This document shows, piece by piece, positions 6,001 through 33,400 of a DNA stretch of 64,000 nt. Below the pieces are notes generated by a model. That model had not been told where the DNA came from. It worked only from the letters and a program-made list of their open reading frames with translations, and did no database searches. A program made the translations under genes and the position numbers. The stretch is from assembly GCA_001179505.1 (NCBI GenBank), contig CDMY01000263.1:62001-126000 (forward strand). Direction: 5' to 3'. This DNA comes from Vitrella brassicaformis CCMP3155. Lineage: Eukaryota; Protista; Chromerida. Every line of letters begins with the position of its first letter. Positions within the stretch are counted from its first letter, which is position 1.

Positions 6001-6550
6001 TCGGCAAGATTTAGAACGCCATCGTTGGTGAACAAGTAGGCCACGCTGCACAATCAATACACACGGACGAGAGATGGATGAATGAAACAGAGAGGAACGG
6101 TATGCATGAGCTGGCTGGAGATATGGTGTGGTGCCGTCAGTCAATCAATCAATCAGCGTCCGTCCATCAATGCATTACATACCCGAGCATCCCTCGCTGG
6201 TTGCCGCAGCAGGCGATGACCAGCTCACCGGGCTGATCCTCGATGTCGGCATTGAGTCCCTCAGCCTCACCAGCACCGCCCTCCTCCCCCACTCCGCCCG
6301 TCAGAGGCACCATCGGGCTGGACGCCCTCGACGTCTGCCGCTGCCGCTTGGGCGCCTGGCCATCGGCTGACTGTTGTGCCTCGGCCGTTGCGTGGTGCGA
6401 TGAGAGGCCGCCGCTCTCTCTGACCGTGTGATCGCGAGGCCGGGGGGGGAGGGCTGGTGTGACGGTCGGCGGGATGTGCGATGATCTCACCCCGCCATGG
6501 GGTGTGCCGGTGCCGCGGGGAGTCGCCGACACGCTGCCGCCAAGTAACAT
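379..6550 (-). CDS. MSH5: MutS homolog 5 (meiotic MutS-gamma subunit), multi-exon
   Basis: Spliced exons give the Walker A region LLGPNASGK|SVYIKMVGIITFLA|HIGSFVPA, Walker B SLLLLDEFGKGTSSIDGIALL (DEFGKGT is typical of MSH5), ATSHYHEIL, and N-terminal LIDLSQTEAVRAAGGLLNFM. ATG at 6550. The stop at 379-381 (…FLDIIRV*) depends on two small hand-modelled terminal exons, so the 3' end is less certain. Confidence 0.85.
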
Positions 6551-6760
6551 GATTTAGCCACCGCTGAACGACAAACCCATCAAAGCCCACCGCTGCGTGT
6601 GATTAATCTGGTAAATGGTGAAGTCGAGCGTTTCACGGAAAAAGATCCGGACGCGCGTAACGGCGTTCCGGATCTTTCCGGATCCTCCCGTTCATTCATC
6701 GGATCTCCTGGGAGTCCGCCCTCCTCCCCAGGTCTGTCGTGTGTGAGTGCACCGGCCGTC
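6551..6760. promoter_or_regulatory. Putative 210-bp bidirectional promoter (MSH5 / repeat polyprotein) containing an inverted repeat
   Basis: Divergent ATGs at 6550 (-) and 6761 (+). AAAGATCCGGA (6641-6651) pairs with TCCGGATCTTT (6667-6677), followed by further CGGATC copies. Promoter function is inferred from position only. Confidence 0.55.
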
Positions 6761-8602
6761 ATGAAGGTCTTCGCCTGCGTTGCCCTGGGCCTGCTGGCCT
6801 TCGCATGTGCCCTCCCGGTAAGATCTGAGTGCATGAACGACACAGCGAGTGCCTGCACCCCCGCCCTGCGTGGATGGGTGTGGGGCCATGAATTTGAATG
6901 TGTGGGGTGCATCTCCCAACGCGTGTGCCCTGCCTGGTGTGTTGTGTGCTCCAGGAGGAAGAGCCGGCCAGGGAGCTCACGGAGACAGCCGCCGAGGACC
7001 TGACTGACGTGGTCAGAAGAACACTTCACTGTTTGTCAGACAAAGAGGCCTCACAGTGCACACGTCACACGTCTTCGTTGCGTTGGATCTTCGAATGAAT
7101 ATGCAGGCGGCCGATGACACGATCATGACGGCAGATGGTCAGCAACCGACGGCACGCTCTGCCCACATCCATCCCATCCGTATGTTCTTGGTATGTCTTG
7201 TGTGTGGTGCAGATGCCGACGCGCGTGAGCTCGGCAGGGGTCACGGCTCTTCCTCTTATTACGGCAAGAAGGCGCCACCCCCACCAAAGAAGGTCACCAC
7301 CACGCCCGCGCCCAAGAAGGAGCCGCCACCCAAGAAGGAGACCCCGCCGCCCAAGAAGACCCCGACTCACACCAAGAAGAGCTACTCGTACGGCGGCAAG
7401 AAGGGCGGATACAGGGAACTCGAGGAGGAGGATGTGACTGACGGTACGTACGTGTATCATGGCACACACATTGCACGGTTGACGGCCCGCCCGCCCGCAC
7501 ACACATGGATGGATGGATGGATGGATGGCGTGACACTCATTGTTCACTCTCCCCCTCTCTCTGTCTCTGTCTGTGTCTGTCTGTCTGTCTGTGTGGTGCA
7601 GATGCCGACGCGCGTGAGCTCGGCAGGGGTCACGGCTCTTCCTCTTATTACGGCAAGAANNNNNNNNNNNNNNNNNNNNNNNNNNNNNNNNNNNNNNNNN
7701 NNNNNNNNNNNNNNNNNNNNNNNNNNNNNNNNNNNNNNNNNNNNNNNNNNNNNNNNNNNNNNNNNNNNNNNNNNNNNNNNNNNNNNNNNNNNNNNNNNNN
7801 NNNNNNNNNNNNNNNNNNNNNNNNNNNNNNNNNNNNNNNNNNNNNNNNNNNNNNNNNNNNNNNNNNNNNNNNNNNNNNNNNNNNNNNNNNNNNNNNNNNN
7901 NNNNNNNNNNNNNNNNNNNNNNNNNNNNNNNNNNNNNNNNNNNNNNNNNNNNNNNNNNNTCTGTCTTGTCTGTCTGTCTGTGTGTGGTGCAGATGCCGAC
8001 GCGCGTGAGCTCGGCAGGGGTCACGGCTCTTCCTCTTATTACGGCAAGAAGGCGCCACCCCCACCAAAGAAGGTCACCACCACGCCCGCGCCCAAGAAGG
8101 AGCCGCCACCCAAGAAGGAGACCCCGCCGCCCAAGAAGACCCCGACTCACACCAAGAAGAGCTACTCGTACGGCGGCAAGAAGGGCGGATACAGGGAACT
8201 CGAGGAGGAGGATGTGACTGACGGTACGTACGTGTATCATGGCACACACATTGCACGGTTGACGGCCCGCCCGCCCGCACACACATGGATGGATGGATGG
8301 ATGGATGGCGTGACACTCATTGTTCACTCTCCCCCTCTCTCTGTCTCTGTCTGTGTCTGTCTGTCTGTCTGTGTGGTGCAGATGCCGACGCGCGTGAGCT
8401 CGGCAGGGGTCACGGCTCTTCCTCTTATTACGGCAAGAAGGCGCCACCCCCACCAAAGAAGGTCACCACCACGCCCGCGCCCAAGAAGGAGCCGCCACCC
8501 AAGAAGGAGACCCCGCCGCCCAAGAAGACCCCGACTCACACCAAGAAGAGCTACTCGTACGGCGGCAAGAAGGGCGGATACAGGGCGCTGAGGGGGGACT
8601 GA
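6761..8602 (+). CDS. Secreted Lys/Pro/Tyr-rich tandem-repeat polyprotein with RxL sites (silaffin/extensin-like)
   Basis: Exons 6761-6817 (MKVFACVALGLLAFACALP, signal-peptide-like), 6955-7011 (EEEPARELTETAAEDLTDV), 7107-7137, 7213-7443, 7602-(gap), 7993-8223 and 8382-8602. All boundaries are GT-AG and phase-compatible. The repeat exon encodes DADARELGRGHGSSSYYGKKAPPPPKKVTTTPAPKKEPPPKKETPPPKKTPTHTKKSYSYGGKKGGYRELEEEDVTD. Confidence 0.85.
7213..8585 (+). repeat. Tandem array of 389-bp exon+intron units (at least 4 copies, one interrupted by an N gap)
   Basis: Exon starts at 7213, 7602, 7993 and 8382. The unit is a 231-nt exon plus a 158-nt intron; introns 7444-7601 and 8224-8381 read identically. 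Confidence 0.95.
7660..7959. other. Assembly gap (300 N) inside the repeat array
   Basis: Run of N. The flanks imply 298 + 389k missing bases. Confidence 0.99.
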
Positions 8603-9330
8603 TGTCTGTTTGGCTGCGTGTCGTGTGGTGTATGTGAGTGATGTGTGCCTGCGTGCTGATGCCCAGACAGGTTGGTCCGTCAGCCAGCCAGTCGACATAG
8701 TGTCTTGCGAGCCGCTTCCTGGGCATGTCCTATGTCCTGTCCTGAGTCCTGTCATCTCATTTTTCTTTCTTACGTCACTTTGCCAGGTCACACAGCCAGC
8801 CAGACAGTGTGGGAGCGGGGACCCCTTTCTTGGAGTGGGTGACACCCGCCCTCTCAGACTCATCGTACGGATGCAAGGCAGACAGCTCATGCATGGACGC
8901 ATCCGTGGCATGCCACGGATGCGATGCTCGCGGTGCCCTGCCAGCCATCCATCTTGACTACTGACTGACCTATTTGTCGTTTTTCTTGTTTGTCTCGTTT
9001 TTATTCATCGGCCTCATGCCTGGGTGTGTTAGCGATACGGCACACAAGCGAGGGCTGGCATGCAGGGGCAGGCGAGGACGAAAAGCATCAGTGTTGTGCC
9101 ACTCGTGCTGCCTTCTGGCAGCCTCGTTTGTGCGCACTGGTGTGTGTGTGTGCGTGTGCTGATGTACGTATCGTATATCATGTACGATGGATGGATGGAC
9201 GGATGGTAAGAGTAGGTTGTCCAGCCACAGCTAGTCGGCTTGGCGTGCGTCGAGTACGGTGAGTGACTGACTGACTGACTGTGTGACTATGGTCCATGGG
9301 GGGGTCGTCGTGACGTCCTTTCCTTTTGAC

Positions 9331-9472
9331 TTTTTTGGCATGCTTGGGCAGCTGGACGGGGTTTTTTTGGCATGCTTGGGCAGCTGGACGGGGTTATGGT
9401 CAGCGACACCAGGGGTGGGATGGCAAAGACACGTATGGTCAGCGACACCAGGGGTGGGATCGCGAAGATACG
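9331..9472. repeat. Two adjacent short tandem duplications (periods 32 and 39 bp)
   Basis: TTTTTTGGCATGCTTGGGCAGCTGGACGGGGT at 9331 and 9363; TATGGTCAGCGACACCAGGGGTGGGAT at 9395 and 9434. Confidence 0.9.
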
Positions 9473-9907
9473 TATGTATGTATATCCATGGACAGACAAA
9501 CCGCACAGCCCAGTTTTAATGGACCTTATCCACTCAAAGCATGTATCCCAGACCGCCTTTTCGTGCAGCTCAAACATTCATCCTTTCCGTTCATTCATGC
9601 AGCATTTGTCACTCATCGACGCAGACTCCCACGCACACCCCAGCCCATTCGGGTCAGCGAGTGACAGCTCCATCACCCATCCCATCCATCGAGAGGAAAC
9701 ATGCAGACAGACGCACGGACAGATGAGTTAGTTGATTCAGGCAGGGGTATGCACGGTTCATGGTGTCAGGCAACAACCAGGGTGTGTCCCGCAGCAGTTT
9801 CCGGGACGACACAATGACCAGACAGACAGAAAAATCACAGAGAGCTGAAAGGCCATCCATCCCTCCACCCATTCATTAACTCACTCGTCTTATCACCTCA
9901 CTCCCCC

Positions 9908-10238
9908 NNNNNNNNNNNNNNNNNNNNNNNNNNNNNNNNNNNNNNNNNNNNNNNNNNNNNNNNNNNNNNNNNNNNNNNNNNNNNNNNNNNNNNNNNNNNN
10001 NNNNNNNNNNNNNNNNNNNNNNNNNNNNNNNNNNNNNNNNNNNNNNNNNNNNNNNNNNNNNNNNNNNNNNNNNNNNNNNNNNNNNNNNNNNNNNNNNNNN
10101 NNNNNNNNNNNNNNNNNNNNNNNNNNNNNNNNNNNNNNNNNNNNNNNNNNNNNNNNNNNNNNNNNNNNNNNNNNNNNNNNNNNNNNNNNNNNNNNNNNNN
10201 NNNNNNNCCATCCCCCCCCCCCCCCCCCCCCCCCCCCC
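9908..10238. other. Assembly gap (300 N, 9908-10207) flanked by poly-C tracts
   Basis: N run followed by a 27-C homopolymer at 10212-10238. Confidence 0.95.
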
Positions 10239-10610: not shown

Positions 10611-13506
10611 TTATATTTGTGTGTCGAGCCACGACTGGAATACCTCCCATTTGGCCGTGAAGGAGTCATCCCCCTCCGCTTCTGACGACCAGGCCGGGTA
10701 TTGATCGTCCCCTGACCAGGTGATCTGGGTGGCGCCCCCTCGTGCCTTCATGGTCCAGAGCTCAGATGTCACGGAGGTGTCCGACTGGTCCTTTGGGATG
10801 GCACGAACGACGCCGAAGAGCACCCCGGAGATGAGCTCCTGCTCGTCACCCACCTCCGTCGCGGCAAAGAGCGAATTGTATCGGAGGTCGCAGCCCGTCC
10901 TGCACACAGAGAACACAGACAGCCAGCTAGGCAGACAAAGATGCATACGTTCTTGTTTGTCCATCCATCCATCCATTCTCATTGATGGGATGGCGGTTTC
11001 GTGCTCACTCACTTGATGAAGAGCTCATCTGCTCCCGTCTCCGCGTCCTGTGTCGTGTGTCAGGGCGGGATATAAACACACGGAGACACACACAGCAGTA
11101 CACAGACCGAGATACATGACATGAATGACCCATTCATTATTCTGTGTTCTTGAGTGTGTACGAATGCTTCAAATGTCCAGCAGCCCTTCGCAAAGCCTGC
11201 AGGCTCGAATGTCACGGGATTCCGTCGACCTACACCATACAACAGCTTCTTCTGAGCTGCAACATAGCACAACAGAACCCAACACGCAGCATAAGCGAAG
11301 AGGCCGGCTCAACACGGAAGCACCTGGCTGAAGCGCTTGACGTCAGTCGGTCTGTCCGTCAGTCTGTCTGTCTGTCTGCGTGTCCTTACTTTCACTTCTG
11401 CTGAGTGTGGGAATGCCGTTAGCGATGAACGTGTCGTTTCTTGTCCATATCGACTCGAGAACAAATGAGTCCTGGTCCTCCGGGTCCCTTTTGAACTCGA
11501 ACTTTTGAATCCCCAGAGGGGAGTCACCCAGCAGCACCGCTATCAGACTGCGGAATTGAGGATCCAGTAGCGACTGCACATCCACACGAGACACACCAGA
11601 TTGACGGCCGATGGGCTGTCTCTTCTACGTGCTGTGCTGTGCTACTCTTAAGTGTGCGCACTGACTGCAACCGTACGTACGTACAGGTGGAAGGGCATCG
11701 CCGAGTAGTTGCGTGAGGAATGCAGCCAGCACCTCAAAGAAGGGTTCTGCACCTTCGGCCACCTTAATGCCCTCGTCAGTCAGGGCGTCATTCACCACGT
11801 ACAGGTCCGTGCCGTCGGCTAACACGGACTGGTGAACACACACAAAGGCGACAAACAGACAGAGAGAGGTAGGCAGGTGAGACGTGGAGACATCCATCAG
11901 GTAGTATAGCTAGTCATTCACCTGGTCCGAGAAGGAAGAGAGCCCGTCTGGGAGACCCCCGAAGGTGACCTCCGCAAAAGCAGCAACCGAGCCATCATCC
12001 GCATGGTAGACCACCAATTTCTGTGGATCTGACCCATCCGTGATGACTGCAGGCAGACACATAGCGACCCGACCAGGTAGATAGGTAGACAGCTATGCAG
12101 GTAGGCAGTCATTTCCCTTACCGATGAAGAGTTCTCCGTCAAGATCGATAATTGTTGGGGAGCTGCCGCTGCCTATGGGAGTGATCCTGCCGATGGCCGG
12201 CTCGTCGACGCTCTCGTAAGCCGATGCCCATATCACCTCCAGGACCCCATCGGTGGGATCCGCCGACGCTGTGAACTGAATCCTGAACACCTTGTTGTCT
12301 TCACCATTGCCGGCAGCCGACGCCCCCGTCACGGCATAGATGTTGCCCAATTCATCCACTGATATCGAGTTCGTCACAGCTGTTCGTTCACATACAAAGT
12401 AGCGAATGTCCACACGTATCGTATCTGGCAGTGCAGCTCATGTGTCGGTCTGCCCGTCTGTCTCGTGGTTGACGGCCGGCTTACCCGGGAGCTCGCCGCC
12501 GTCTTCCTCTTGGTCCAATGCGACGACGTTGGACACCTCCGTAAACGTCTCTGTCTCCCTGTCAAAGCTGAGGACTCCCACCTGGGCCCTGAATGTGATG
12601 TAGGCCATCAACAGAGACGACGAGTCCGTGTCCCCGGCAGCAGGGTACAGTGGCACCACCGCATAAAATCGGTCGTCCTCTATGGTCGTATCCAGCCTGT
12701 CGGACCCGTCGAAGAGGAACTCGGCGGCCACTCTGATATCGGAGAGAAACTCGCCCTCCTCTGCGTCAGAGAGAGCGAAGATACGGCGGCCATTCGGATT
12801 GAAGTAGTAGTTATCGCTTGTGACGAACGAGTAGATGCCGTGAGGTGTGATGTCGATGTCGGAGTCCGGCTTCTTGAAACAGTCCACGATGCCCAGATCC
12901 GTCGTCGTCCGCGACACCTTGCAGATGTCCTACACACCCGCATACACACGACATGGTGATGGTCAATCAATGGTATCTTTGTGTTTCGTAGAATCAGTCA
13001 GTCCGTGAGTCAGTCATGCAGTAACTGACGGTGAATGAGGACGACCAGAAGCCATCGGAAGTGTCACCCCCCTTTCTGTCGGTATAGAGGAGGGACGTTG
13101 GGCCCAGGAGCACTATTGGGTCGAACAAAGACTGCCTTGCCACGTCTAGCACTGGACCAAAAGGCCCTGACTTGAAGTCGCCTCTGTCGATGCTTGGCAG
13201 GTCGGTGCTTGAGGGAGTCAGGCACACAGCACAGGCAGACACAGCTGGAACGTTGATCTTCCGTGCCTCTCACCTTTGATCAGAGTATGAGTTTTGTAGA
13301 GCGATTGGCCACGCTGTTGTGGCGGGCACCCCAAGCCACACCACAGACAGACGAACCCATCTTGTCTTGGGGTCCGTGAGTGTATGCGAGTGCTGATTGA
13401 TTCACTCACCGAATTTCGCAAGATTGTCGTTTTGCGGCACCTCTTCGTTGATTTGTGAGCTGGCAAGGCCGCAGAGGGCCAGCAGAAGTACGATGGATGG
13501 ACGCAT
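10611..13506 (-). CDS. Secreted acidic protein of an uncharacterised, mainly bacterial beta-propeller-like family
   Basis: Exon 1 (13410-13506) encodes MRPSIVLLLALCGLASSQ (signal-peptide-like). Later exons give TNSISVDELGNIYAVT, WASAYE…GRITPIGSGSSPTII, VITDGSDPQKLVVYHADDG, CWTFEAF|DAETG and YNSLFAATEVG…SGVLFGVVR. Stop at 10611. The family assignment is from recalled motif order, not a search. Confidence 0.7.
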
Positions 13507-14077
13507 TGGCTCTGGGCAGTAGGTCGAACTTGGTCAATCTGGTCGGTACGCTGCGTAAATTCTCTTGCCGCGAGATAAGCGTGCACGTCTCTCTTGCCGC
13601 TGGTGAGATTGCACGTCAACAAAGAAGTGTCTTGTGTAGTTCGAGTAGTGTCACGAACAAACAATGTCCCCCTGTCTGCCTTCCTCCCTCCCTCCCTCCC
13701 TGCTGTCACATGATGGATGACCCAATTCACGCACACACTAAGCTATCCAGATGTCTGTGGGCACGTGTCGACTAAGACACTAATGTCCGTCTGCCGTGGG
13801 ACACAAACGATGCACCATCGGCTTGACCACAAGAATTATCAAACAACACTAACAAACACGTACACACCACCCACCCACCCACGTACATGTCATTCATTTA
13901 CCCCATACTATGGGTGTGGAACGGAACACCACAGCACGGAATAACACGAACAACGACACGCATCACGTGACAGAAAAAAGGATACTAATGCCACTAGCTG
14001 ATACTGCAGACTAATCACTTAAAGACAAAGAGGCAGACCAGTGTTTGTGTGTGTGCGTGTGTGTCCCCTTCTGCCAC

Positions 14078-19100: not shown

Positions 19101-21739
19101 CGACGCGCGACGTGCAGATGGACTTCATCAACCGCTTTGAGATGTTCGACGAGCTGTCCAAGTTCGAGAAGCTGCGGCTCCTGGAGGCACTCGAGGCCAG
19201 GTATGTCGAGGCCGGACAGCGAATCATCCAGCAGGGCGACACCGGACACGAGTTCTTCATGATCGAATCGGTCAGCCAAGCCAGGGAGTGGGCTGGGTGC
19301 ACTGCACCCCTTGACTTAGGGAGTCGGGTCGTGTGTACGTACCTACCTACCTACATGTGCATTGATTGCATGTACGCATACGAATACGCATATACGTGTG
19401 TGTCTCATGTGTATGTACGCAACGCATGTGTGTACATACATATACATCCGTGTGCCTGTGCGTGTGCAGGGCGAGTGCAAGTGTGTGGTGACCAACGAGC
19501 ACGGCGAGGAGTCCGAATGTTTCAGACGACTACAGGAAAGTGGCACACATTCATTGGTCGATCAGTGAATGAATGCTTCGTATGTGTGCCTCCCTGTGTC
19601 TTTTGGTAGGGTGGGGATTTCTTTGGCGAGTTGGCGCTTCTGCGCAAGAAGCCTCGTGCCGTGTCTGTGGATGCCGTGACGGACGTCAAGGTATACGTGT
19701 TGGAAGAGGAGGCCTTCGAGAGACTCCTCGGGCCCCTCGAGGAAATACTTAGGCACGTACACATGCATACACGCGTGCAGGCATGCTTACCGATGGCGTG
19801 GCGGGACCGCCCCGGCACTGCACTGCCTGCCGTGTGCATTTGGTGTGTGTGTGTGTGTGTGTGTGCAGACGCAACATGGACAACTATGCCGTCTACATGA
19901 GGAAACTCGGCCTGCAAATCGAAGACGCGGGCGAACAACAGGTAGGCACGAGTTGTGCTGGCTGGGTCAAACACGCCAGCCCAGCAACAAGGGAACGTAT
20001 TTTAAGAAACGTTTGTCGGAAGGATCCAACACGCCTTTCTATGTGTCGGCGTGGGTGCAGGCAAAGGAAGATGAGGCGCAGCAATACTCGGTGAGTGAGT
20101 GAGCAACGAAGGGTAGAGCCCGCTGAGGGGGCCCTGGCTGGTCGTGAAGCGGTCCGTGTAGCATCAAGCACTTCGTGCTTTTGCATGAACCCTGAGATAT
20201 TCGGCACCTTCAGAGATTCGCCACTCCATTCTTTCCCCTCTGTGCTGGCTGCGGGGATCTGCTTTTATTGGTTGATTCGTGCAGGCTGTGTCCATGGCGG
20301 ATGAAGGTGGTGAGGGCCAGGATGGCGATGCTGCTGATCTCAAGAGCGAATATGACGAGTCGGCACCGCCATCACCGACCGCAGCATCGGGGTAAACCAG
20401 ACACGCACTTACAGCGCCCACAAAGGGATGCCATGATTGTTCTTGCTGCCCTTTGCATATCAGGCCGCCTCCTGCCGCAGTGCGATCGAGGAGAGGTAAG
20501 ACATGGACTCATATTTGAGACTGACCCTGATCGATGGAGGCAAAACCCGCACAATAAAGACAGATGAATGCACACGGGTGCATCGTACGTCCCCAGCGCT
20601 CTGTCTGTTCATTGCTGTGCAATGTGATGACATTGCCCTCTCTGGCCTGTGGTTTATTCACCAGCGAATGTGATGGGTGAGAGTCTGGAGGACGACGCCG
20701 ACTTCGTGCCGCCGGTGATTCCCAAGACTGCCGAGGACGAGCAAGTCATCTTCTCGGCTGTCGGCAAGAACGTGCTCTTCAGCCACCTGGCCAAGGAAGA
20801 GACGCGTGTCATTGTCGACGCCATGGAGGCCAAACACTTGGAGCAAGGGGAACTCATCATCAAACAAGGTATATGCATATATACGTGTATATAGGGCTCA
20901 GACAGACAGACAGACAGACAGACAGGCCAATGGTGGCCTGATGCGATGCGACACACCCANNNNNNNNNNNNNNNNNNNNNNNNNNNNNNNNNNNNNNNNN
21001 NNNNNNNNNNNNNNNNNNNNNNNNNNNNNNNNNNNNNNNNNNNNNNNNNNNNNNNNNNNNNNNNNNNNNNNNNNNNNNNNNNNNNNNNNNNNNNNNNNNN
21101 NNNNNNNNNNNNNNNNNNNNNNNNNNNNNNNNNNNNNNNNNNNNNNNNNNNNNNNNNNNNNNNNNNNNNNNNNNNNNNNNNNNNNNNNNNNNNNNNNNNN
21201 NNNNNNNNNNNNNNNNNNNNNNNNNNNNNNNNNNNNNNNNNNNNNNNNNNNNNNNNNNNATGTGTGTCTCCCTGTGTCTTTTGGTAGGGTGGGGATTTCT
21301 TTGGCGAGTTGGCGCTTCTGCGCAAGAAGCCTCGTGCCGTGTCTGTGGATGCCGTGACGGACGTCAAGGTATACGTGTTGGAAGAGGAGGCCTTCGAGAG
21401 ACTCCTCGGGCCCCTCGAGGAAATACTCAGGCACGTACACATGCATACACGCGTGCAGGCATGCTTACCGATGGCGTGGCGGGACCGCCCCGGCACTGCA
21501 CTGCCTGCCGTGTGCATTTGGTGTGTGTGTGTGTGTGTGTGTGTGTGCAGACGCAACATGGACAACTATGCCGTCTACATGAAGAAACTCGGACTGCAAA
21601 TCGAAGACGCGGGCGAACAACAGGTAGGCACGAGTTGTGCTGGCTGGGTCAAACACGCCAGCCCAGCAACAAGGGAATGTGACAAGTGAGGACTGCACGA
21701 CTTCGTCTGGCTGTATTTATCTCGCAGCAAGCAGAATGA
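16174..21739 (+). CDS. cAMP-dependent protein kinase regulatory-subunit-like protein with a Dpy-30/RIIa-type docking domain and three tandem R cores
   Basis: MSWKIKRAS|[31 protein letters not shown] is docking-domain-like. Three RRxNV linkers each precede a CNB-A/CNB-B pair, with cassettes [15 protein letters not shown] and FGELALL(SN/RK)KPRAVS. Most of the third CNB-A lies in the N gap. The 3' end is uncertain (21689 if read through, 21739 if spliced). Confidence 0.85.
18369..21677 (+). repeat. Recent intragenic segmental duplication 18369-19995 / 20658-21677
   Basis: Exons and introns are near-identical with scattered substitutions (ATGAGGAAACTCGGC vs ATGAAGAAACTCGGA; ATACTTAGG vs ATACTCAGG; one extra GACA unit). 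The copies share ends at TCACCAG and CAAGGGAA. Confidence 0.9.
20960..21259. other. Assembly gap (300 N) in the third PKA-R core
   Basis: The flanks map to 18662 and 19582 in copy 2, so about 919 bp would be missing if the structure is conserved. Confidence 0.95.
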
Positions 21740-30400: not shown

Positions 30401-33400
30401 ATCCCACTCATCAACACTCACACCCACGACACCATACAGGTACCGCACCGTACCGCACCGTACGGAAGTGCCTGTCCTGTCCTGTCTGTGGACGTGACGT
30501 CCCTACGCATACCATACACGAATGAATGACCTGACTGTGTGTGTACTGTACTGTACGGGTGGGTGTCTATCCATCAGACGGCCGAGACGCTGCTGGACCA
30601 GGTGCCAGCAGTGTATCCTCCCAGCGGCGTGGCTTTATCTGTACTCCCCGAGGATGGCTATGTCAGCGGGGCCACCCCAGAGCCCGCATCGCAGCAGGTG
30701 GTGGGTGTTGCGGTGGTCGAGGGCCCCCACCATGGTGCCGCTGGCAGAGATGAGGGTGGTGGTCGAGACGTCCCCGCCGACCCCAATGCTGCCCTCGCTG
30801 CCAGCTCCATGGACCTCGTTTTCACCGCTGTCGCTGCCATACAGGCCTCACCTATCGGACAGGTAAGTAAGGATGTATGTATGTACCTTGGCAAATATAC
30901 CTACACAGCAATATATATGCACACACCACACTACTAACGCCTAGCTATACGTCTTGTAGCTAGCCATACTCTTTCACACGCGCGTGCACGCACACCATGT
31001 CATGATCGTGTGTGTTCCATCTGTCTGTCTGTCTATGTCTGTGTGCAGGAGGCGTTGCCTCGCGGCTTGGAGCGTGAGGATCAGACCGGTGGAGGGGTTG
31101 GGCTGCGTGGTCCGACCCCCGAGCAGCTGGTGCCAGCCGCCACTTACTCGCCATCCCTGACGGAGATCAGGGCCCCCACCGGCGGCTTGTCCATCACGGC
31201 ACCCCCCAAGAGCGTCAAGTCTGATTCCCGCGATGCGTCGCCGCTAATGGGTCTTCATCCTTATAGCGAGACCACTGGGGACGGCAGCCGATCGGAGCCC
31301 GGCGCCGTCCCACCGACCACCGAGTCGCTACTGGACTCGGTCGGCCCCGGCGCTTTCACCAGTCCCCACCCCCCGCCCTCAGCATCCTTCACCTCGCCTC
31401 TCGTACAAGATGCCTACTCAGAGGCGGCAAGCCGGCCGCGCGGCACCAGCCAAGGCTCCTCCAAGTCAGCACCCGATCGGCCAGTCGCCGCACGCGCACC
31501 ATCACGAGGGCCGCAAGAAGACAGCCGACTAGTGGACCTCATCGGGGGCGACCAACACCCGACAGGACCGCGGGGCGGGGGGGCTGATGCATTTTCGCAG
31601 GAGGGGTCGACCGGTCACCGAACTCTTGCATCAAGTCCAACGTTAGCAAACTCACACACAACCCTGCAGACAAAACACGGGGGGNNNNNNNNNNNNNNNN
31701 NNNNNNNNNNNNNNNNNNNNNNNNNNNNNNNNNNNNNNNNNNNNNNNNNNNNNNNNNNNNNNNNNNNNNNNNNNNNNNNNNNNNNNNNNNNNNNNNNNNN
31801 NNNNNNNNNNNNNNNNNNNNNNNNNNNNNNNNNNNNNNNNNNNNNNNNNNNNNNNNNNNNNNNNNNNNNNNNNNNNNNNNNNNNNNNNNNNNNNNNNNNN
31901 NNNNNNNNNNNNNNNNNNNNNNNNNNNNNNNNNNNNNNNNNNNNNNNNNNNNNNNNNNNNNNNNNNNNNNNNNNNNNNNNNNNNCGGGGGGACACGGACA
32001 TCGGAGTGAGGGACAGAACAGACAGGCGAAGGAAGAGTGCAGCCCAGCCAGCGACTGCGTGTACTTACTTCCTGTGTGTATGTGTGTGTGCAAATGCATG
32101 CCTGCAGTCCGGGTCTTCCTGTTGAGGACCTGCTGATGGGCAAGGAGCGCCCTCCAGTGGCGGACAAGGTGCCTGCGCCATCATCTCAGCCGGTCCTGAC
32201 GGCCTCGCCCCCACTCCCTACCGTCACGGTGGTCAGATCTCACACGCGAGAGAGCGTCGCACCCGTCTCGTCACAAGGGGCAGACAGTACCACCGCAGGA
32301 CAGCCGGGACAGCCTGGCATCGACGCCACTGCCGTCCCCAAATCCACCCCTGCGGCCGTCATCCACCAGCAGTCTCTGCCAGCACGACCGGACCACACGG
32401 CAGCCGACATACACAGCGTCGCCGTCAGGCCCCCTGCCCAGCCGCCGCCCGCTGCCTCCCCACCGCAGCACCACCCTCTTCCTCACCCCCACCCCCCGCC
32501 CGGGCGCAGCCAGCAACAAGCCAGCCAACCACAACCACACCCACACCCACACCACCAACCAGCCGATGTCGGCGGCCACGTGTCCTTCGACGCCAAGTCC
32601 CTCAGTCGGCCGCCATCGACGGCCAGCACACCTAACACGCCCTCCACACGCGAGGGGGACCTGGGAGGCCCCGCAGTTGCGCCGCACGGGAGTGGCGCCG
32701 GGGTGCGGGATGGAGGCCGCCACGGCACGACCAGCGGTGCACCGCCAATGGAGTCACCTTCCAGGGACATGCCTGGAGGTGGACCCGTGGGTGGAGCGGC
32801 CCTCGAGTCGCTCACCCCAAACATCGTGGTGGAGTCAGCCAGTCATGGCAGCAGCGGGACATCCCTGCACCAGTCCACTTCCACTCGACGAATAAGTGTC
32901 GCAGTGGAGGAGGGCGACGTGGGAGAAGAGAACATTTTGAAAGTACTGACCAACACAGACGCACTCAGACAGATAGACAGACAGGGGGCACCGCAGCTCT
33001 TTATGTATATCTCTGTCTTGTTTGTTCAGGACGTGACCATCCACTTCCGTTTGACCAGTGGCAAATTCAGGCGAGTACAGTTTGATTACAATCTCGGTGA
33101 GTGAGACATGCATGCTATGCCACCACTCATACATACTCTACGCACGTCGATGTGCAAGTATGGAGAGCCCTCAGACATGTGCGGTGGGTGGTGTTGCTGG
33201 TTGGTTGCAGACTCCGACACCCCGGTCCAGGTGGCCGCGGAGCTCTTCAGGTGTGTCACAACGCAGGCAGCTTCGGATGTCTTCGATTATGTGAGTTTCT
33301 TGGTCCAACCTGCGTTGTGTGTGTGATATCGATGCATGGGTGCATGCCTTCAGCCAATTGCACGGGTGCGGGCTTCCTCCCCTGCTGGCTCCAGGGCACT

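Follow-up and report, generated by a model that had tools for sequence, protein, structure and literature searches.

An expressed orphan gene of Vitrella brassicaformis encodes a predicted secreted repeat protein with R-x-L motifs at its charge boundaries

Introduction

A tandem-repeat gene at positions 6761-8602 of a 64,000-nucleotide (nt) stretch of the Vitrella brassicaformis CCMP3155 genome (contig CDMY01000263.1 of assembly GCA_001179505.1; hereafter the window, eukaryotic DNA with 56% G+C and four assembly gaps) raises the question of whether its open reading frames belong to a genuine gene, and whether the encoded protein is a precursor matured at R-x-L motifs (Arg, any residue, Leu; also written RxL). 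Our results indicate that the gene is real, expressed, orphan and precursor-like. The original prediction, made from the sequence alone, had described a polyprotein in which an RxL protease releases basic wall or adhesive peptides from acidic spacers; this view is supported in part, since the gene exists, is spliced and expressed, and carries an RxL motif at every boundary between basic and acidic blocks.

Processing at R-x-L has been described in two distant groups of organisms, diatoms (in their silica proteins) and apicomplexans. The apicomplexan proteases plasmepsin V and ASP5 license protein export and constitute a drug target; for the R-x-L processing of diatom silica proteins we know of no identified protease. 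A free-living, culturable relative of the parasites, with RxL at all module boundaries of one protein, may serve as a probe of the role that R-x-L processing had before parasitism.

Gene structure and expression

Contigs of four public sequencing runs were aligned to positions 6500-7659. Two of these runs (X10 and X11) belong to one study and are labelled as probably RNA, and the other two (X1 and X2) are DNA-like runs from other studies, of 2012 and 2015. The RNA contigs begin at 6668 (X10) and 6678 (X11), giving the 5' untranslated region (UTR) a minimum extent of 6668-6760; no ATG occurs within this known part, and translation starts at the ATG at 6761 on the plus strand, on which the whole gene lies. 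Exon 1 (6761-6817), whose end is set by an RNA joint between 6817 and 6955, encodes a predicted signal peptide of 19 residues (MKVFACVALGLLAFACALP). It is followed by intron 1 (6818-6954; 137 nt, donor GTAAGA), by exon 2 (6955-7011), which according to RNA joints and translation encodes an acidic pro-region (EEEPARELTETAAEDLTDV, net charge -7) with an RELTE motif whose Arg codon lies at 6970-6972, and by intron 2 (7012-7106; 95 nt, splice sites GTCAGA..ATGCAG). Both introns are removed at GT..AG in the contigs of X10 and X11, which cover neither intron nor upstream DNA, whereas the contigs of X1 and X2 span the introns and lack the RNA joints.

Exon 3 (7107-7137) is also acidic, encoding AADDTIMTAD and the first base of an Asp codon. 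RNA contigs cover it from 7106 or 7107 to 7137 and then pass into ATGCCGACG, which is the start of the repeated unit exon; the loose end at 7137 places the third intron, also GT..AG, at 7138-7212 (75 nt). The first unit exon (7213-7443) measures 231 nt, encodes 77 residues and is in phase 1 at both ends. A 261-nt contig found in both X10 and X11 is self-closing; it jumps from 7442 to 7212 and so repeats every 231 nt, which corresponds to the in-frame joint of one unit exon with the next. A second RNA contig departs from the unit at 7416, reads CGCTGAGGGGGGACTGATG and continues for a median of 255 more letters, and thus represents the RALRGD end, the stop codon and the 3' UTR. In agreement with this, the last exon (8382-8602) follows the unit up to GGY, diverges from it at 8586 and closes with RALRGD and TGA (8600-8602), so that the protein ends in GYRALRGD, as had been predicted. 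The RNA letters past the divergence point give the 3' UTR an approximate lower bound of 8603-8830. All introns of the gene are of the GT..AG type, and its transcript, splice pattern, start codon and stop codon are established.

Contig depth provides no usable measure of expression level. In X10 and X11, unit contigs (7212-7443) exceeded the 5' exons (6668-7137) in word depth by a factor of 11-22, against a ratio of 4-5 in DNA; the RNA excess could be due to 3' bias, to other transcripts sharing the unit or to an assembly effect.

Repeat array and copy number

The first unit exon is followed by a unit intron of 158 nt (7444-7601, GT..AG) containing (TGGA)n and (TCTG)n microsatellites (7480-7600, and again 7960-7992 in a later copy). 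The second unit exon is represented by its first 58 nt (7602-7659), which are identical to 7213-7270, and is then truncated by an assembly gap (7660-7959) that holds the rest of this unit and possibly more units. Behind the gap lie a unit intron tail (7960-7992), a third unit exon in the numbering of the assembly (7993-8223), another 158-nt unit intron (8224-8381, the same as 7444-7601) and the last exon. Both flanks of the gap are part of one 389-bp unit of exon plus intron: units 1 and 3 (7213-7601 and 7993-8381) match at every one of their 389 bases, and units 2 and 4 begin with the same sequence as unit 1. The sole difference among units in the assembly is the (TCTG)n run of the intron tail behind the gap, which is unlike 7560-7601 and implies that a hidden unit is an imperfect copy.

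All four gaps of the window (7660-7959, 9908-10207, 20960-21259 and 31685-31984) consist of exactly 300 N; gap lengths in this assembly are therefore conventional and carry no information. Since unit exons are in phase 1 at both ends and the RNA joints are in frame, the reading frame is kept for any number of hidden units. The assembly displays four units, and the depth of unit contigs relative to the unique 5' contigs was about 5 in X1 (96 vs 18.7) and about 4 in X2 (54.4 vs 13.3); the contig that contains the internal intron-exon junction gave, taken alone, about 3-5 units. These values suggest some 3-5 units per gene copy, with DNA contig depth being a rough bound only. The 389-bp array was missed by Tandem Repeats Finder because the gap breaks it, and was shown by direct comparison. 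Copy number would grow, and the units be homogenized, by unequal crossing-over or gene conversion, as a one-exon module in phase 1-1 with identical introns would explain.

Organization of the predicted protein

By inspection, the peptide of exon 1 carries Lys as its second residue, a hydrophobic core of 13 residues and A-C-A (residue 17) before the likely cut, and is predicted to be a signal peptide for the endoplasmic reticulum (ER), likely cleaved after A-C-A. The acidic pro-region that follows extends over 30 residues with a net charge of -11 and contains RELTE; translation and RNA joints thereby bear out the predicted order of a signal peptide and an acidic pro-region with ARELTE.

Each unit exon encodes D-ADA, REL (7224-7232 in the first unit), a basic core of 60 residues, a second REL (7413-7421) and EEEDVTD, the last of which, together with DADA of the next exon, forms an acidic spacer of 11 residues. 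The core comprises 14 Lys arranged as seven KK pairs (23%), 13 Pro (22%), 8 Gly, 7 Thr and 5 Ser (Thr and Ser together 20%), 5 Tyr (8%) and one PPPPKK, with a charge of about +13 and an isoelectric point (pI) of 10.2. The 77-residue unit of REL, 60 residues, REL and 11 residues, and the Lys, KK, Tyr and PPPPKK counts, had all been given correctly in the original prediction. Together with REL, the spacer constitutes an acidic 14-mer (EEEDVTDDADAREL) with a charge of about -7, so that the protein reads as a block of -11 (the pro-region) followed by n repetitions of +13 (core) and -7 (spacer). The spacers had been proposed to neutralize the basic peptides; however, they offset only about half of the charge, as the 77-residue unit is still at net +6 and the last unit at net +12.

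Within the core, ends made of Ser, Tyr, Gly and Lys (SSSYYGKK and KKSYSYGGKKGGY) surround five Pro/Thr-rich segments punctuated by KK every 6-9 residues. Judging from this composition, such a plan would fit a stiff spacer whose two ends are sticky or open to cross-linking, and the predicted product represents a novel kind of secreted polycation, a Pro/Lys rod with Tyr/Ser/Gly ends. Single-sequence AlphaFold modelling returned zero secondary structure and a predicted template modelling score (pTM) of 0.14, a result expected of an extended, disordered chain, as this one is predicted to be.

Two other assignments were tried and rejected. Bipartite plastid targeting was discarded because the region after the signal peptide (-11 over 30 residues, beginning with Leu-Pro-Glu) does not resemble transit peptides, and a DNA-binding protein of the histone-H1 or SPKK type was ruled out by the signal peptide and the acidic spacers.

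R-x-L sites: enrichment, position and variation

For the RxL count, each distinct segment was taken once, namely exon 2, exon 3, one unit and the RALRGD tail. These 112 non-redundant residues contain four RxL motifs, against 0.44 expected in segment shuffles (P = 1.5e-5), and the presence of two motifs inside a single unit is itself unusual in shuffles (P = 0.001). RxL accounts for four of the five Leu residues downstream of the signal peptide. The positions of the motifs coincide with the sign changes of the charge map, where basic cores (+13) meet acidic spacers (-7), and the first of them, R24-E-L26 of RELTE, lies 7 residues past the likely signal cut. RELTE and RELEE had also been noted to fit the consensus RxLxE/Q/D of the apicomplexan export motif PEXEL. 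This is correct for these two (and for RELQE in a variant copy described below); RELGR and RALRG do not fit, and RRL, the TEXEL form, is found nowhere in the protein.

A second, diverged copy is present in both DNA runs (X1 and X2) at a depth roughly equal to that of the first, and may be either an allele or a paralogue. Its 5' part (6626-7078) displays 12-15 substitutions, small indels and the replacement of a 49-nt stretch in intron 1; its unit variant (seen in X1 and X2 over 7376-7462) carries A>G at 7418, G>C at 7422 and an insertion of CA behind 7462. On translation, the signal peptide changes at V3L, F4L and L18V, and exon 2 at L16I and T17N, with RELTE left intact apart from one silent change inside the motif; in the unit, RELEE becomes RELQE, which still matches RxLxE/Q/D. 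The only Leu outside an RxL motif is the one that becomes Ile. These changes favor a constraint on RxL, albeit anecdotally.

Searches for relatives

All searches, like the fold model, used the exons as separate queries rather than the joined mature chain. Pfam returned no family for the unit or for the open reading frame of the last exon; a mucin-like match (E = 0.019) was far below the cut-off and lay partly on residues of the intron frame. Word searches over the length ranges 281-894 and 58-184 residues gave no match, and the protein itself was likewise absent from the collections. HMMER comparison with 1.84 billion representative sequences produced one match only (P0001) and no true relative: P0001 was rejected, as it is an unrelated repeat protein devoid of RxL that matches through seven copies of a 23-residue motif, SYGGxKGxYR. 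A search of the ESM Atlas by features provided no usable match, and among JGI metagenome contigs 600 patterns matched and none was confirmed. By these comparisons, the predicted protein is an orphan assigned to no family.

Comparison with known systems

Plant extensins and other proline-rich wall proteins, as well as mussel foot proteins, are secreted and built of extended repeats rich in Pro, Lys and Tyr. The predicted protein resembles extensins in the Y-x-Y motif, with one SYSY and one YY per unit as putative cross-linking positions. Nevertheless, the earlier label 'extensin-like' does not hold, as the defining Ser-Pro4 motif is missing: no SPPP(P) of the extensin Ser-Pro(3-5) type occurs in the unit, in which the sole PPPP comes after Ala and the remaining stretches of Pro come after Glu or Thr, and Pfam yielded no extensin match for the unit. 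Furthermore, acidic spacers and RxL fences are not known from any of these families.

The closest architecture is that of the silaffin precursor Sil1p of the diatom Cylindrotheca fusiformis, in which a signal peptide (residues 1-19) is directly followed by RXL and an acidic N-terminal domain, and then by basic Lys/Ser/Tyr/Gly repeats that end in RRIL or RRNL, sequences that are removed on maturation, the peptides being freed by cleavage there (PMC4557024). The protein described here shares with Sil1p the signal peptide, the RXL behind it, the acidic region and the tandem basic peptides ending in R-x-L; moreover, each core is closed by REL or RAL, and its 14 Lys among 60 residues, with a charge of +13, fit a silaffin-type layout. 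The differences are that our units are 60 residues long with a Pro/Thr-rich center, compared with 15-33 residues in Sil1p, and that each peptide has an acidic spacer and a further RxL in front of it, whereas the repeats of Sil1p abut directly. The term 'silaffin-like' is thus appropriate for composition and architecture and inappropriate for descent, as no sequence relationship to Sil1p, nor any sequence relative at all, was found. This weighs little, because the silaffins of different diatoms are themselves mutually dissimilar in sequence (PMC4557024). A general role of RXL as a signal for processing is assumed for the silica proteins of diatoms, among them silacidins, cingulins and frustulins (PMC4557024).

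Plasmepsin V and ASP5, which are clade D aspartyl proteases, cut behind the Leu of their motifs in the ER or Golgi (PMC8540915, PMC13505904); the first of these sources takes in proteases of Vitrella and Chromera. Their substrates resemble our protein in RELTE, which lies near the signal peptide and has an acidic P2' residue, and in RELEE or RELQE at the core ends. However, the motif in our protein recurs as a fence between modules, while PEXEL is a single N-terminal site; RELGR and RALRG lack E, Q or D at position 5, RRL is missing, and there is no host into which proteins would be exported.

Two further systems of secreted proteins offer partial likeness. Siliplant1 (Slp1) of sorghum is a basic, disordered protein with seven Pro/Lys/Glu-rich repeats, only three of which end in RXL, and with sub-domains of opposite charge (10.1101/518332). 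Basic disordered repeats, oppositely charged sub-domains, some RXL motifs and, for our protein by prediction, secretion are common to both; Slp1 differs in belonging to a plant proline-rich protein family, in its His/Asp-rich domains and in a silica deposition tied to silica cells, and no similarity was detected. The oocyst-wall precursors GAM56 and GAM82 of Eimeria, a member of a related lineage, are secreted and processed to small peptides, which are believed to form a resistant wall by dityrosine cross-linking (PMC2726925). These proteins differ from ours in having long Tyr-rich regions (Tyr being 5 of 60 in our core) and in not being made of tandem identical modules; RxL fencing is not described for them, and no homology to them was found.

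Possible processing and function

Our leading reading is that this expressed, lineage-restricted gene encodes a secreted, unfolded polyprotein that would be cleaved at RxL into putative extracellular polycations of wall, matrix or adhesive. Drawn by analogy with the systems above, it appears to us plausible, though short of probable. Following this proposal, the chain would be imported into the ER by its signal peptide, and an endoprotease of the secretory pathway that recognizes R-x-L would cut behind the Leu at each charge boundary. Each module would yield one polycation of about 63 residues (GRGHG...GGYREL), n in all; the other products would be n-1 of the acidic 14-mers, two acidic fragments of the pro-region and the tripeptide RGD from the C-terminus. 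Once released, the polycations would have an extracellular use in matrix, wall or adhesive, in which their Lys may bind anionic polymers and their Tyr might be cross-linked.

Cleavage at R-x-L and a role in the wall are both suggested by motif position and analogy. Several points weigh against this proposal. Given that the units are identical, their REL motifs are not independent of each other and only four RxL sites are; these four (ARELTE, ARELGR, YRELEE and YRALRG) may in turn share descent, two of the four types are devoid of the acidic or amide P2' residue of plasmepsin V substrates, and RRL, as in the TEXEL of Toxoplasma, occurs in none of them. Conservation is unusable as evidence, since no homologues were found. 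With Tyr making up only 8% of the core and Ser-Pro4 lacking, the cross-linking chemistry is a guess, and the idea that the peptides are kept neutralized until their release is weak, with spacers that offset half of the charge.

The same protein might also act without being cut, as a secreted, disordered block polyampholyte (+13/-7) of wall, mucilage or adhesive in which RxL plays no role in cleavage, a function comparable to that of plant proline-rich or extensin-type proteins or of mussel foot proteins. Its Lys/Pro/Tyr/Thr/Ser composition, lack of fold and signal peptide are compatible with such a role, and so are the weak, sub-threshold mucin-like match and the fact that identical units make the repeated REL motifs non-independent. 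Nevertheless, RxL is enriched (P = 1.5e-5) exactly on the charge boundaries, it also occurs beyond the repeat proper, both after the signal peptide and near the C-terminal end, and RELTE is retained in the variant copy with its neighboring residues altered; we consider an uncut protein rather unlikely. Multi-peptide precursors of insects and plants have acidic spacers, and a signal peptide followed by an acidic propeptide and n repetitions of basic peptide and acidic spacer would equally describe a multi-copy precursor of cationic, Pro-rich antimicrobial or defense peptides, directed against the bacteria that surround this coral-associated alga. The unfolded, Pro-rich core (+13, pI 10.2) and the high word depth of unit contigs in the RNA assemblies, which is unreliable as an expression measure, agree with this possibility. 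However, a peptide of 60 residues with neither an amphipathic or hydrophobic face nor Cys is unlike most antimicrobial peptides, which makes this alternative improbable.

A functional analogue of silaffins or Siliplant1, whose Lys-rich peptides would act together with the co-released acidic ones to condense a polyanion or a mineral (silica or another), either within the wall or in a compartment of the secretory pathway, appears very improbable to us. KK clusters with Ser/Tyr/Gly ends and a Pro/Lys-rich center as in the Slp1 peptide (10.1101/518332), as well as the RxL fences and acidic N-terminal part that Sil1p also has (PMC4557024), speak in its favor; on the other hand, our literature search found no report of this alga mineralizing or making silica, and our protein has no homology to any silica protein. 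In vitro silica precipitation is common to many polycations, so that such an assay would prove little. Lastly, the array could be an artefact of assembly or annotation, either a repeat that was collapsed or made chimeric or repetitive non-coding DNA with a frame open by chance, as the gap within the array, copies that are 100% identical including their introns, and the absence of the protein from the collections searched might suggest. This explanation is largely refuted and retains hardly any probability, because spliced contigs of two runs remove three GT..AG introns and contain in-frame unit joints, the stop codon and the 3' UTR, and the introns are covered by independent DNA runs from 2012 and 2015.

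The gene product, if processed at all, would by analogy work as an RXL-processed precursor of polycations. A broader proposal is that Leu-side R-x-L cutting constitutes a general secretory maturation code in this free-living sister lineage of the apicomplexans, one by which polyproteins would give rise to tandem polycations for wall or adhesive as well as to other peptides, and that may be the source of PEXEL/TEXEL, and perhaps of diatom RXL, or convergent with them. We regard such a code as doubtful; if it were true, the gene would be a natural multi-site substrate with which the protease and its specificity could be defined in a culturable alga, and its many identical RxL sites would make it suitable for finding and characterizing the enzyme. 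If uncut, the product would merely be an ordinary orphan repetitive protein of wall or mucilage. The core polycation may be one of the components from which this alga builds its thick wall, on whose proteins our literature search found nothing; as far as that search shows, an RxL-fenced precursor of secreted polycations is unpublished for this lineage.

Genomic surroundings and minor observations

No cluster of like genes is present in the 64-kb window. Upstream and on the minus strand, an open frame at 1713-2159 matches MutS domain V just under the Pfam cut-off (E = 4e-6) and is probably part of a MutS-type gene, according to this match. Downstream, also on the minus strand, an exon-sized frame at 14078-14941 matches cEGF (complement Clr-like EGF) just above the Pfam cut-off and probably belongs to an extracellular EGF-repeat protein. 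A short open stretch at 13405-13533 of the same strand has a clean signal-peptide-like start (MRPSIVLLLALCGLASSQ...) and no RxL, and may be exon 1 of a further gene for a secreted protein. Some 730 nt past the stop codon of the repeat gene, two short tandem repeats adjoin each other at 9331-9476 (32 nt x 2, perfect, and 39 nt x 2.1), and two open stretches with repeated units, at 19610-19897 and 21288-21686, share their first 25 residues.

Finally, between 15% and 27% of the sampled words of 6500-7659 were found in four marine sediment metagenome runs (X12-X15, of 2025); the organism that carries the gene, or a close relative, may be present in marine sediment.

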